Below are positions 27,501 to 60,800 of a DNA stretch of 64,000 nt, one piece after another; within the stretch, counting starts at the first letter, position 1; the number at the start of each line of letters is the position of its first letter. A model generated the notes under the pieces. The model ran no database searches. It was not told where the DNA came from and saw only the letters and a program-made list of their open reading frames with translations. Made by a program: the position numbers and the translations under genes. This DNA comes from Macrostomum lignano. Its lineage: Eukaryota. The stretch spans positions 372,001-436,000 of the forward strand of contig NIVC01000130.1 of assembly GCA_002269645.1 (NCBI GenBank), written 5' to 3'.

Positions 27501-30500
27501 CCCCAAAACCTTACCTTGGTCTGCATCATGACCCCAAATAAACCCTCACCTTGGTCTGCACCATGACCCCAAACCCTCACCTTGGTCTGCACCGTGACCC
27601 CAAACCCTCACCTTGGTCTGCACCATGACCCCAAATAAACCCTCACCTTGGTCTGCACCATGACCCCAAACCCTCACCTTGGTCTGCACCATGAGTTTGC
27701 GGCAGGCCCGCAGCTGCATGACCGTCTCAAACACGTTGATGGTTTTGGCGCCGCGCAGCTCCAGCGAGCGCACCAGGATGTCCAGCGCGATCAGGGTGCC
27801 GGTCCGGCCGACCCCGGCGCTGCAGTGCACGAGAATCGGCGGCTCGTCGTCGCTTCGCCTCAACTTCGGCGCGTAGCTGCGCATCTGGGCGAGGAAGTCG
27901 GCGAGGTCGTCGACATTCGGCACGTTGTAGTCAGCCCAGCCCAGGTAGAAGAGCTGCACCACCTGAAGCGGCTCCGTCTGGTTTCTACGCAGGTTGGAGG
28001 GGTAGAAGAGAGGAACAGCGTACCTGCCCCAGCAGAAATACTTGGTATGTAAATTCGCTATTAAATATACACTTTACCTGTCGGCACTGCACGTGACCAG
28101 CATTTTCCGAACCGTATAAGTACCCAATGAACTTTCGCTGTCCAATACCACTTTGATGTCGTCGTAATATTCAGATTGGCCAACAGTTACTGGCCAGAAA
28201 CGCTCGCATTTCTTTTTCTCGCCTTCGAGGCACTGGGTTAGGGTTATAATGAGAGTCACCTTGTGCTGGTAGATCATGCGCCAGTGATCGTCTAGTGTGC
28301 CCGGCAGGGGGCCTTGGCTGGCTATGAACTCTCTCTGGCGGTCCAGGCCCCTGATTTGAGGATGGGTGGGGTTGCAACTTCACTTGCTTTTTAGAAAACT
28401 TTGGAAGGCTGATTTTTTACGCAAAAAATGTACACACTTACCCCATACATCCAGCTCACCTAGTTCACTCTCCTAGTCCTATAGTGTACACCTAGTTCAC
28501 TCTCCTAGTCCTATAGTGTACACCTAGTTCACTCTCCTAGTCCTATAGTGTACACCTAGTTCACTCTCCTAGTCCTATAGTGTACACCTAGTTCACTCTC
28601 CTAGTCCTATAGTGTACACCTAGTTCACTCTCCTAGTCCTATAGTGTACACCTAGTTCACTCTCCTAGTCCTATAGTGTACACCTAGTTCACTCTCCTAG
28701 TCCTATAGTGTACACCTAGTTCACTCTCCTAGTCCTATAGTGTACACCTAGTTCACTCTCCTAGTCCTATAGTGTACACCCAGTTCACTCTCCTAGTCCT
28801 ATAGTGTACACCTAGTTCACTCTCTTAGTCGTATAGTGTACACCCAGTTTACTCTTCTAGTCGTATAGTGTACACTCAGTTCACTATTCTAGTCGTATAG
28901 TGTACACCCAGTTCACTCTTCTAGTCCTATAGTGTACACCTAGTTCACTCTCCTAGTCCTATAGTGTACACCTAGTTCACTCTCTTAGTCGTATAGTGTA
29001 CACCCAGTTCACTCTTCTAGTCGTATAGTGTACACTCAGTTCACTCTTCTAGTCGTATAGTGTACACCCAGTTCACTCTTCTAGTCGTATAGTGTACACC
29101 CAGTTCACTCTCCTAGTCGTATAGTGTACACCCAGTTCACTCTTCTAGTCGTATAGTGTACACCCAGTTAACTCTACTAGTCGTATAGTGTACACCCAGT
29201 TCACTCTCCTAGTCCTATAGTGTACACCCAGCTCACTCTCCTAGTCCTATAGTGTACACTGTGTACAGTATGCAGTTAAAACTCGACCATTCCTTGTAAT
29301 TTATATCTACATGTACCAAACTGCATAACAAGCATGAATGTACACTGCTACAGGTACGCACCTACCCCTCTCCAGCTCACCTGATGTAGTTGGCATTGAT
29401 ATAATCATCTGGAGCCAAACCCGGGCCTTCGTAGTCGGATTCCAGAGTCACCCGAGTATGATCGTAGGGCAGGATGTCCGTGTACCGGTTCTTAGCCCTG
29501 TTGCAGTCTTCCATAGCCGCATCGCAGGTGAACTTGTAGTGCTCCAACGCTGTGCACTCTTCCCGCATCTCTTCAAACTGCAGGTGAACCCCCAGCTCGC
29601 TGTCTCTCAGCATTGAAGCCGCGTAGAAACCAAACTCTTCAACTGCCACCCCGTGGCTTTCTAGGCGTCTTGGGAAAATTGAGATGCAGAAATAATTAGG
29701 GTGGATCTTGTCAAGGACTCAAAGGGGAATTAGATGCTCAAAAGAAGCTTATCACAACTCACTGCATGGGAATATCTCGCGATTCCAGCCTTCCGCCTGA
29801 GGCGCCCATTCCAAGAAAGTGACGTCTTAAAAACAGCGACGCTGTCACGGCGACCACTGCAATAGCTAGAAACAACATTGTGCCGGTGAGGCCGACAGCC
29901 AATAAGCTAGAAGATACCTCTGGTTCCGGTGTAGTCCTCACCTGGAATTGAGGCCATGTTGGGATGTTCGTTGGGATTTGGATTAGGAACATATGCCAGA
30001 AACATACGCTTAGTTTACACCTAAGAATGTTTAACAACTATAGCATAACACTTGTCTAACAGTTGTGTACCTGTCTAACTGTTTTGTACGTGTCTAACTG
30101 TTGACATTGACCTGTCTAACACAACAACTGTAGCAATAACATAGGCAGTGTCCTGTCATCCATCATAATATTTGTCTAAATTTAACATCTATATCTTTTT
30201 TACAGTAACTATAGCAAAGTGTGTATCACAGTTTAAAACCATTCAAAGAAAATAATTTTAACAAAAAAGAGATTATAAACTGTAATTAGGTATTTTCTTA
30301 CCGAAGCCCACTGCACCTCGGACGTCTGGTTCATGTAGACAGCCCAGTAGGTCAGGTTGTATTCGAAGCCCGGCATCAAATTGTAAAAGATGATTTCACA
30401 GAAATGTTTTCTAACATCACAAGAATAATTTTGTCTTTCACCGGATACTCGTGCTTCCATTCGATCAGAAGTAGTTCTCTCTTTGAAGGACGCAACTAAT

Positions 30501-57800: not shown

Positions 57801-60800
57801 AGTCTGCACCAAGACCCCAAACCCTCACCTTGGTCTGCACCATGACCCCAAACCCTCACCTTGGTCTGCACCATGACCCGAAACCCTCACCTTGGTCTGC
57901 ACCATGAGCCCAAACCCTCACCTTGGTCTGCACCATGACCCCAAACCCTCACCTTGGTCTGCACCATGACCCGAAACCCTCACCTTGGTCTGCACCATGA
58001 CCCCAAACCCTCACCTTGGTCTGCACCATGACCCCAAACCCTCACCTTGGTCTGCACCATGAGCCCAAACCCTCACCTTGGTCTGCACCATGACCCCAAA
58101 CCCTCACCTTGGTCTGCACCATGACCCCAAACCCTCACCTTGGTCTGCACCATGACCCCAAATAAACCCTCACCTTGGTCTGCACAATGACCCCAAACCC
58201 TCACCTTGGTCTGCACCATGAGCCCAAACCCTCACCTTGGTCTGCACCATGACCCCAAACCCTCACCTTGGTCTGCACCATGACCCCAAATAAACCCTCA
58301 CCTTGGTCTGCACCATGACCCCAAACCCTCACCTTGGTCTGCACCATGAGCCCAAACCCTCACCTTGGTCTGCACCATGACCCCAAACCCTCACCTTGGT
58401 CTGCACCATGAGCCCAAACCCTCACCTTGGTCTGCACCATGACCCCAAACCCTCACCTTGGTCTGCACCGTGACCCCAAACCCTCACCTTGGTCTGCACC
58501 ATGAGCCCAAACCCTCACCTTGGTCTGCACCATGACCCCAAACCCTCACCTTGGTCTGCACCATGACCCCAAATAAACCCTCACCTTGGTCTGCACCATG
58601 ACCCCAAACCCTCACCTTGGTCTGCACCATGAGTTTGCGGCAGGCCCGCAGCTGCATGACCGTCTCAAACACGTTGATGGTTTTGGCGCCGCGCAGCTCC
58701 AGCGAGCGCACCAGGATGTCCAGCGCGATCAGGGTGCCGGTCCGGCCGACCCCGGCGCTGCAGTGCACGAGAATCGGCGGCTCGTCGTCGCTTCGCTTCA
58801 TCTTCGGTGCGTAGCTGCGCATCTGGGCGAGGAAGTCGGCGAGGTCGTCGACATTCGGCACGTTGTAGTCAGCCCAGCCCAGGTAGAAGAGCTGCACCAC
58901 CTGAAGCGGCTCCGTCTGGTTTCTATGGAGATTGGAGGGGTTGTTAATAAATATTCGCAAAAAGACTTCCAATAGTCGTGTGTAGTAGACTTTATATGTA
59001 GCGATTTTTTTTATTAGAGGCAGGGGGGTTGTGTGCACCCTGGCGCACTTTAAGCGACATAAGCACACAACCGGCGAGAGGCATTACTGCCCATTCCGCC
59101 GACTCCCCTGAGCAGGCATACAAGCGCGCGGATACGTACGCAGGCACACACTCACACGGAGTGTACAGCGGCCCTAACTTTATTTTATCGTTAGGCATGT
59201 ACACTTCACTGCGCCTTGGGGGGGGGTTGGCTCTCAAGGCCGTTAATTGCACGAGCAGAGCCAAGCCGAGATTCCAATTCAGCTCCAAATTAATGTGACT
59301 GCACTTGGAATCGAGCCTGGGTCGCTGGCACACCAGAGCAGCTGCGCTACCGCTGGGCTACGGCCCCCCTATGTGTAGCGATCCTAATTCATTAAGTGAC
59401 GCGGATGCGCTTTAGACGCAATTCAGCGATTCTGCAGCGACTCTGGCACGATCCTATTCTTCAATATCCCAAATAATCACAAACAGGAGTACCGACCTGT
59501 CAGTAGAGCAGGTGACAGACATCTTGCGCACAGTGTAAGATCCCATCTCGCTCTCGCTCTCAAGGAAAACTTTGATCTCATCGTAGGTCTCGCACTGGCC
59601 AACAATCTCTGGCCAATAGCGCTCCGACTTTCTCTTCATGCCCTCTTGGCACTGGGTGAGCGTGAGGATCAGCGTCACCTTGTGCTGGTAGATCATGCGC
59701 CAGTGATCGTCAATGGTGCCCTGGATTGGGCCCTGGCTGGCTATGAACTCGCGCTCGCGATCCAGGCCCCTGTAATTCAATTGGCACTCCTTAACTAACC
59801 GTTTTAAAACCATGACTCACTTTCCCATCATGACTCACTTTCCCATCATGACTCACTTTCCCATCATGACTCACTTTCCCATCATGACTCACTTTCCCAT
59901 CATGACTTACTTTCCCATCATGACTCACTTTCCCATCATGACTCACTTTCCCATCATGACTCACTTTCTCATCATGACTCACTTTCCCATCATGACTTAC
60001 TTTCCCATCATGACTCACTTTCCCATCATGACTCGCTTTCCCATCATGACTCACTTTCCCATCATGACTCACTTCTCCATCATGACTCACCTCTCCATCA
60101 TGACTCACTTCTCCATCATGACTCACTTGTCCATCATGACTCACTTTACCATCATGACTCTCCTCTCCATCATGACTCACTTCTCCATCATGACTCACTT
60201 CTCCATCATGACTCACTTTACCATCATGACTCTCCTCTCCAATTCCTCATCATGCCCCGCCTTCTCATTGTGACACACCTGCATCATTATGACCCACTCG
60301 CACAACCCTGACCCACTCGCACAACCCTGACCCACTTGCACAACCCTGACCCACTCGCACAACCCTGACCCACTTGCACAACCCTGACCCACTCGCACAA
60401 CCCTGACCCACTCGCACAGCCCTGACCCACTCGCACAACCCTGACCCACTCGCACAACCCTGACCCACTCGCACAACCCTGACCCACTCGCACAACCCTG
60501 ACCCACTCGCACAACCCTGACCCACTCGCACAGCCCTGACCCACTCGCACAACCCTGACCCACTCGCACAACCCTGACCCACTGGCGCAACCCTGACCCA
60601 CGCCGCAAAAGCATTCGACCGACTTTAGCAGAAATCAGAGCAGTAAAAGATTATTAGAGCAAATTAAATCTGTCTTACTTGATGTAGTTGGCATTAATGT
60701 AGTCGTCCGGAGCGTGGCCAGGTCCTTCGTAGCTTGACTCGAGAACAACCCGAGTATGGTCGTAGGGCAGGATGTCCGTGTACCGGTTCTTTGCCCTGTT

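Follow-up and report, generated by a model that had tools for sequence, protein, structure and literature searches.

Analysis of a 64,000-nucleotide stretch of the genome of the flatworm Macrostomum lignano (assembly GCA_002269645.1, contig NIVC01000130.1, positions 372,001 to 436,000; hereafter the window) reveals two tandem protein tyrosine phosphatase (PTP) genes, probably of the receptor type, A and B, both on the minus strand and ~31 kb apart, which are old duplicates but share an almost identical catalytic exon. We consider it very probable that this exon was involved in a recent non-reciprocal interlocus (non-allelic) gene conversion with a tract of ~450–640 bp. The copied segment would run from the acceptor of exon 3 through the whole 307-nt exon and into the first 2–4 units of a 31-nt minisatellite. 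An earlier sequence-only reading of this DNA had proposed a recent exon-scale conversion between diverged paralogs, and the proposal is supported here by non-uniform synonymous divergence (dS) between exons, by a match that reaches into the introns before and after the exon and by the finding that nothing else can be aligned beyond exons 1 and 2.

The exons coding for the PTP domain were placed by locating the peptides quoted in the sequence-only reading, followed by reading of the splice junctions. All four of the peptides quoted from the flanking exons were found (28232–28185, 59651–59604, 27080–27048 and 57242–57210). In gene A, exons 1 to 4 are located at 29381–29668, 28078–28350, 27678–27984 and 27029–27104, and in gene B at 60679–60972, 59497–59769, 58616–58922 and 57182–57266, all on the minus strand. 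The four exons are colinear and in the same orientation in the two genes, with 30,938 bp between the copies of exon 3, and those of each gene splice into an open frame. Exon 3 of gene A is identified by its splice sites, its frame, the match to PF00102 and the alignment to PTPRS, and exon 3 of gene B by its splice sites and frame.

Both copies of exon 3 are 307 nt long (27984..27678 in A and 58922..58616 in B) and, exactly as had been noted from the letters, they differ at just three positions (304/307 identical). These are positions 115 (G in A, A in B; synonymous, Ala), 122 (T/A, Leu to Met) and 126 (G/A, Arg to Lys). All three lie within a 12-nt patch, GCCGAAGTTGAG in A (27859–27870, minus strand) and ACCGAAGATGAA in B (58797–58808, minus strand), at the site of a variable surface loop directly before the P-loop strand. 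Local divergence in the patch is 25%, which is the background level, and the patch looks like an unconverted or restored island and not like three separate new mutations. A search of the window for a third copy of the patch, which could have served as a local template, found none.

The match extends beyond the exon on both sides. Downstream, an ungapped alignment shows 2 mismatches in the first 138 nt of intron 3 (+84 and +111) before the copies fall out of register at +139, which bears out the claim that identity continues for more than 100 nt into the junction array. Upstream, the sequence-only reading had placed the drop of identity right at the acceptor. The fall there is indeed sharp, but it is not a dead stop, since 17 of the 21 nt before the acceptor are still shared (CTACCCCTCCAACCTGCGTAG in A, 27985–28005, and CAACCCCTCCAATCTCCATAG in B, 58923–58943, both minus strand). 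Farther upstream identity is 26%, the random level, and nothing aligns; intron 2 is unrelated between the two genes, being 93 nt long in A and 574 nt in B. Within the high-identity tract of 448 nt (27540–27987 in A and 58478–58925 in B, minus strand), which takes in 3 nt of the acceptor, exon 3 and the initial 138 nt of intron 3, the copies mismatch at 5 sites. Its size can be given at three levels, as 264 nt of perfect identity, as 448 nt at 98.9% and as part of a 636-nt BLAST block at 92.6%.

Comparison of one locus with the other by blastn returned exon 1 at 75.6%, exon 2 at 74.1% and the block of exon 3 plus array at 92.6% over 636 nt, and nothing else. A search for other shared segments with sensitive blastn and tblastx found only these three and a weak exon 4, and no intron was aligned. 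Divergence between genes A and B was then estimated for each exon by the Nei-Gojobori method, and dS is far from uniform. Exons 1 and 2, which serve as unconverted controls, gave dS of 1.12 and 1.93 and non-synonymous divergence (dN) of 0.25 and 0.17, respectively. In exon 4, also unconverted, synonymous sites are saturated, so dS is not computable, and dN is 0.39. Exon 3, in contrast, has a dS of 0.014 and a dN of 0.009. At third codon positions, exon 3 shows 1 difference in 103 sites and the other exons 102 in 210 (Fisher p = 1.8e-21). In the coding alignment the copies run without a mismatch for as much as 183 nt, whereas the longest runs in 20,000 permutations averaged 25 nt and never exceeded 57 nt. 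This run and the contrast at third positions together exclude chance. Selection on the protein had been discounted from the letters as the cause of the synonymous identity. Of the 96 codons for the same amino acid in exon 3, 95 are identical (elsewhere in both genes, 81 of 141).

Exons 1 and 2 on one side and exon 4 on the other have stayed paralog-specific, which argues that a patch was copied. A single unequal crossover was rejected on this ground, as it would have left hybrid genes. The tract stops where alignable sequence stops, that is, at the unrelated intron 2 upstream and at arrays out of register downstream. We infer that the tract is exon-sized through this limit of homology and not through selective trimming, because only the exon and the array offer enough homology. 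The homogenised active site stressed in the sequence-only reading would then be a consequence of conversion and not a demonstrated function. Conversion tracts are known to range from tens of bp to 1–2 kb. A 448-bp tract within a 636-bp block is also of normal length against the few hundred bp published for conversion tracts in a study that reports GC bias in non-allelic conversion (Harpak et al., 10.1101/135152).

The minisatellite at the junction is built from the splice site itself. The array begins at the donor site of exon 3, and its first unit lies across the boundary of exon and intron. Read on the coding strand, the 31-nt unit joins the first 14 nt of the intron, GTGAGGGTTTGGGG, to the 17 nt that end the exon, TCATGGTGCAGACCAAG, so that the donor AAG/GTGAGG (slash at the boundary) is recreated in every unit. 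The array of gene A (27368–27677, minus strand) has ~9 units of 31 or 35 nt, with three copies of a 97-nt higher-order repeat, and its distal units are degenerate; that of gene B (57802–58615, minus strand) has 25–26 homogeneous units. Including the authentic site, gene B presents 26 identical AAG/GTGAGG donors (57802–58632), while gene A has 5 of these plus 2 AAG/GTAAGG (27368–27694). Both arrays open with a standard unit followed by a 35-nt variant ('a, L'), after which the order of variants differs, and variant units are shared only at the exon-proximal end. The array maps were also considered as a guide to the direction of transfer. This was given up, as both maps start with 'a, L' and A has its own 97-nt higher-order structure, so that the giving gene cannot be named. 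The frame is preserved if exon 4 is spliced to the first donor, and likewise if it is spliced to the third (31 + 35 = 66 nt). The first two units form an open frame, and therefore use of the third donor would add 22 in-frame residues just before the Q-loop.

The distal part of intron 3 carries a second repeat. In gene A it is a decayed GTCAT-core repeat with 7 GTCAT in 263 nt (27105–27367, minus strand), and its counterpart in gene B is an intact 20-nt GTCATG-core array, GGTGGAAAGTGTCATGAGAG (57337–57684, minus strand). The degenerate distal units of the junction array of A and its decayed GTCAT repeat indicate that the repeats of intron 3 are older than the recent exchange.

Related arrays are present elsewhere in the two genes. 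Intron 1 of gene B (59811–60232) contains a GTCATG-core array with an 18-nt unit, ATGGGAAAGTGAGTCATG, and the 31-nt junction unit contains GGTCATGG; a common origin of the GTCATG-core arrays and the junction unit is possible. In intron 1 of gene A (28457–29380), GGTGAGCTGGA is present twice, once at the exon 1 donor (29380) and once where a 32-nt array has its distal end (28460), and this array may likewise have grown from donor-proximal intron sequence.

Exon 3 also stands out in base composition. The GC content at third codon positions (GC3) is 0.92 in A and 0.91 in B, versus 0.56–0.76 in exons 1, 2 and 4 (exon 3 against the rest, Fisher p = 2.7e-7 for A and 1.4e-4 for B), 0.31–0.51 in the remaining exons of gene A and 0.34 in a neighbouring gene. 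Along gene A (27029–40058), GC3 rises from 0.31–0.43 in the ectodomain exons through 0.51 in the transmembrane (TM) exon and 0.63–0.67 in PTP exons 1 and 2 to its peak in exon 3, at the junction array, and returns to 0.64 in exon 4. At this one locus, both identity and GC3 fall away from the junction. Such a composition hints at repeated GC-biased conversion; in human non-allelic conversion it is documented that converted regions become GC-rich through biased repair (10.1101/135152). The high GC3 of exon 3, the gradient of GC3 along gene A, the 81% identity of the acceptor flank and the 12-nt divergent island lead us to infer that more than one conversion event has probably taken place at exon 3, and the 21-nt acceptor flank may be what is left of an older and longer tract.

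For both genes, public gene models of M. lignano include a second copy. When the reconstructed PTP domain was used in a protein search, it returned M. lignano entries at 100%, 85% and 65% identity and nothing else above 43%, which identifies the window as DNA of this free-living flatworm. With regard to further paralogs or other Macrostomum species, this search yielded four M. lignano models only, the next best matches (38–43%) being from other phyla. Look-ups of five exact products, two of them from the open reading frames (ORFs) of the window that run from exon 3 into the array, found no DNA of the second copies or of other assemblies. Model A0A1I8IC38 is an A-type copy in which A-type exons 1 and 2 are linked to exon 3; its exon 1 carries four substitutions, and its exon 3 shows no change at the protein level. 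Model A0A1I8F1J3 links exon 3 to B-type exons 1, 2 and 4. Its frame-shifted exon 3 reads KVEAK, a reading that is possible only with the A-type T at position 122, the single position of the patch that is informative here. If this model is faithful, the patch would differ between copies of B, which would be weak evidence for exchange or mutation since the recent genome duplication.

The models were also seen to break at exon 3. A0A1I8I150 ends after exon 2, A0A1I8JH30 runs into intron 2, A0A1I8IC38 ends at the donor of exon 3 and A0A1I8F1J3 is frame-shifted within it. The poor annotation of the catalytic exon is probably due to the junction array and the duplication of the exon. For users of this annotation it matters that models of both genes break at exon 3 or at the junction array, and that the catalytic exon is missing or garbled in several proteins.

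The sequence-only reading had further suggested that the minisatellite promoted the conversion as a recombination seed. Such a causal role is compatible with the anatomy of the locus and plausible, although we rate its chance as well below even. The idea is supported on homology grounds, because outside the arrays the two loci have no long stretch of homology. The minisatellite could supply long homology for strand invasion between genes which are otherwise only ~75% alike. Alternatively, it could act as a break-prone sequence, the array being G-rich on the non-template strand (GC skew +0.52). Minisatellites, GC-rich sequence and non-B-prone motifs have been associated with conversion (Chen et al., PMC3966225). 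The same source gives the homology needed for conversion as a minimal efficient processing segment (MEPS) of >200 bp, nearly unbroken, together with ~92% overall similarity and describes conversion as nearly confined to duplicates more than 92–95% alike (PMC3966225). In a wider form of this idea, junction minisatellites of M. lignano would be portable homology islands and break-prone sites, and would time and again cause the exon beside them to be converted, with polarity and GC bias, between paralogs that are otherwise far too diverged to recombine. We regard this wider form as rather unlikely. If it were true, single exons would evolve in concert over the long term while the rest of the genes drift apart, and, if true across the genome, this would amount to repeat-mediated, exon-level concerted evolution. 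It would also provide studies of donor choice with dozens of naturally occurring arrays in which an identical 5′ splice site is repeated.

Several observations weigh against repeated conversion with a contribution of the array, or against parts of the evidence for it. The comparison is an unpolarised one of A with B in one genome sequence. The GC3 excess likewise comes from one locus, is unpolarised and could have another cause. The array could merely have been carried along by conversion. In the array of gene B, neither a canonical G-quadruplex motif (loops of up to 12 nt) nor a G-quadruplex in the minimum-free-energy fold was found; G-quadruplex formation was dropped as a cause of array fragility for want of a motif, and the G-richness of one strand is the argument that is left. 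A look for older tracts in exons 1 and 2 gave no significant longest run of identical codons (P = 0.18) and a marginal number of runs (P = 0.037). The evidence from A0A1I8F1J3 comes from a frame-shifted, low-quality model. Finally, polishing cross-talk may account for the missing last few percent of difference between the copies, but we think this improbable.

Part of these observations would equally suit a real but single conversion in which the minisatellite is just a passenger or a boundary, with no seeding or promotion, and in which the GC3 of exon 3 has another cause. We see this as a serious possibility, though short of an even chance. An association cannot be derived from only one paralog pair, a point in its favour together with the missing canonical G-quadruplex and the non-significant older tracts. 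Moreover, catalytic exons are the most conserved ones and would anyway be the first to keep similarity of heteroduplex grade. However, the surrounding similarity of ~75% in exons and nil in introns is far under the ~92% reported for efficient exchange (PMC3966225), the repeats predate the recent event as judged from their decay in gene A, and identity and GC3 both drop with distance from the junction of array and exon.

An artefact of assembly or polishing would mean that the copies of exon 3 are really more different, or that one of them is absent, owing to polishing with mis-mapped reads or to a local collapse. M. lignano assemblies are hard, 34% of the window consists of tandem arrays, and poly-G runs in the distal array of A resemble homopolymer noise. 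We nevertheless hold an artefact to be improbable. A reduction from ~26% to 1% divergence is beyond what polishing can do. A PTP domain needs exon 3 in each gene, and both genes have one in the right phase and with good splice sites. The 3 private differences and the very different arrays (~9 versus ~26 units, in another order of variants) indicate that the copies were assembled separately. The distance from exon 2 to exon 4 is only 1.3–2.6 kb per locus, which is within single long reads, and the window has no N gaps. The same exon 3 is also present in public models of both paralog types, which agree with the structure of the window but may come from the same assembly.

Lastly, it is barely conceivable that there was no exchange and that selection at the nucleotide level (extreme codon bias, an overlapping RNA element or splicing enhancers) holds the exons identical: a GC3 of 0.92 does mean that few codon choices are in use, and ~60% of the codons for the same amino acid are identical even in exons 1 and 2, but the 95 of 96 informative codons in exon 3 exceed the 81 of 141 elsewhere, codon selection would not stop at one exon, the match spans 138 nt of intron 3 and 3–21 nt of the upstream intron, and a search for a structured RNA found no Rfam family at threshold in the window.

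Interlocus gene conversion as favoured here has its nearest classical parallel in the human fetal globin genes HBG2 and HBG1 (G-gamma and A-gamma), where Slightom, Blechl and Smithies reportedly described in 1980 a conversion with a boundary at a (TG)n simple repeat in the second intervening sequence (IVS2). In both cases the paralogs are arranged in tandem at distances of a few to tens of kb, a near-identical segment with sharp bounds stands beside much more diverged sequence, and one boundary falls in an intronic simple or tandem repeat, which in HBG was proposed as a recombination hot spot. Unlike in HBG2/HBG1, the M. lignano repeat is a 31-nt minisatellite which duplicates an exon-intron junction. 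In addition, the flatworm paralogs are far older (dS >1) and the converted block stands as an island amid DNA that cannot otherwise be aligned. Human hypervariable minisatellites are said to be hot spots of meiotic conversion with polarity (Jeffreys et al., 1994). The junction array resembles them in being G-rich and strand-asymmetric, in having variant-repeat maps shared at one end and scrambled farther in, and perhaps also in a concentration of exchange at the array end which adjoins flanking DNA. However, exchange at the human minisatellites is allelic and was measured in sperm, whereas here it is between paralogs and is deduced from one genome sequence.

With non-allelic conversion in general (10.1101/135152; Mansai, Kado & Innan, PMC3924818; PMC3966225), the present case shares a tract of a few hundred bp, GC-richness and close tandem genes in the same orientation; it differs in that the surrounding similarity is ~75% or nil, so that exchange has just a local homology island to rely on. 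Identity along the gene is mosaic, as is the divergence of tandem HMA4 paralogues (10.1101/2025.10.29.685298). A junction array of the same kind is known from intron 7 of human F7, where the first unit of a 37-bp variable number tandem repeat lies across the boundary of exon 7 and IVS7 (Borensztajn et al. 2006, PMC1557585). The identical downstream pseudo-donors of F7 are silent and the most upstream site is chosen (PMC1557585). As in F7, the M. lignano minisatellite starts at a donor site and places a series of identical pseudo-donors behind the authentic 5′ splice site. Unlike the F7 array, which is made of a few units, lies in a single-copy gene and has no connection with conversion between paralogs, it has up to 26 identical donors and is present in two paralogs. 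A search of the literature found no report of gene conversion or of junction minisatellites in M. lignano. As interlocus gene conversion between duplicated genes, this is a standard event, a clear but ordinary case. What is unusual is the age of the paralogs together with the isolation of the converted island, the donor array with 26 sites, and the combination of both features.

This has practical consequences. A dS estimate or a tree that includes exon 3 would make old duplicates look young, and single exons are unsafe for such purposes in M. lignano. Knock-down or knock-out reagents directed against the catalytic exon would strike A and B alike. Conceptually, conversion would here have taken place in a homology island between genes whose similarity elsewhere (~75% or unalignable) is well below that usually thought necessary, the island being extended by a minisatellite which copies a splice junction. 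A link between tandem repeats and concerted evolution at the level of exons thus becomes testable in an unusually repeat-rich genome.

The products of both genes match PF00102 over its full length (236–238 bits), and among single-domain structures the best whole-length alignments are to PTPRB, PTPRJ, PTPRO, PTPRH and Ptp10D. Judged by their predicted products, A and B are classical single-domain PTP genes, probably of the receptor type. The HCX5R P-loop, the Asp of the WPD loop and the Q-loop (MVQT..GQL) are present in both PTP domains. Exon 3 codes for the WPD loop, the P-loop and the start of the Q-loop (MVQT, with the first Gln), and the name 'catalytic exon' is therefore accurate. The WPD loop reads W-A-D in both paralogs (LGWADYNVP, ~27900–27925 and ~58838–58863), the Asp being kept and the Pro replaced by Ala. 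Exon 4 reads GQLAF, where most PTPs have (E/D)QYxF.

Gene A extends upstream to ~40058, its minus-strand ORFs comprising a hydrophobic, signal-peptide-like start, a coding minisatellite rich in Ser, Thr and Ala (S/T/A) and a TM-like exon. Some exons of this stretch are weakly fibronectin-III-like, with an fn3 match of 20.8 bits that lies under the cut-off of 25. The coding minisatellite (39408–39924) has a 12/24-nt period and is located in the first large ORF of gene A; its product is a long S/T/A-rich, mucin-like stretch which follows the signal-peptide-like start. The upstream part of gene B, which would code for its ectodomain, is outside the window.

Downstream of gene A, a plus-strand ORF (21637–22110) matches, with 30.7 bits, the sialomucin family MGC-24/CD164 (PF05283). 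This ORF has a short and weak counterpart downstream of gene B at ~56298–56486 on the plus strand, which suggests that the old duplication unit held a PTP gene and an MGC-24/CD164-like gene.

Tandem arrays account for 21.7 kb of the window (28 arrays with periods of 4–86 nt, Tandem Repeats Finder score of at least 200), and most of them are intronic or intergenic. More than half of the M. lignano genome is repetitive, with 15% simple or tandem repeats, and the sequenced DV1 line is partly duplicated (PMC5730564). An intron of gene A holds, at 31000–34200, the remnant of a non-LTR (long terminal repeat) retrotransposon, whose ORF for reverse transcriptase (RT) and RNase H is at 32063–33847 on the minus strand. 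The model A0A1I8IC38 joins antisense ORFs of this same insertion to the second copy of gene A, and the insertion is therefore older than the duplication that gave the second copy. Between the two PTP genes lies a Ty3/gypsy-type LTR retrotransposon (41854–52076) with gag, RT and integrase ORFs on the minus strand. Its LTRs (41854–42103 and 51824–52076) are 97.2% identical. Nested within it is a non-LTR element on the plus strand with ORFs for endonuclease, RT and RNase H at 44459–48036. The same 16-nt array is found on both outer sides of the Ty3/gypsy element (40654–41848 and 52070–52626), and the element was therefore probably inserted into an already existing array.

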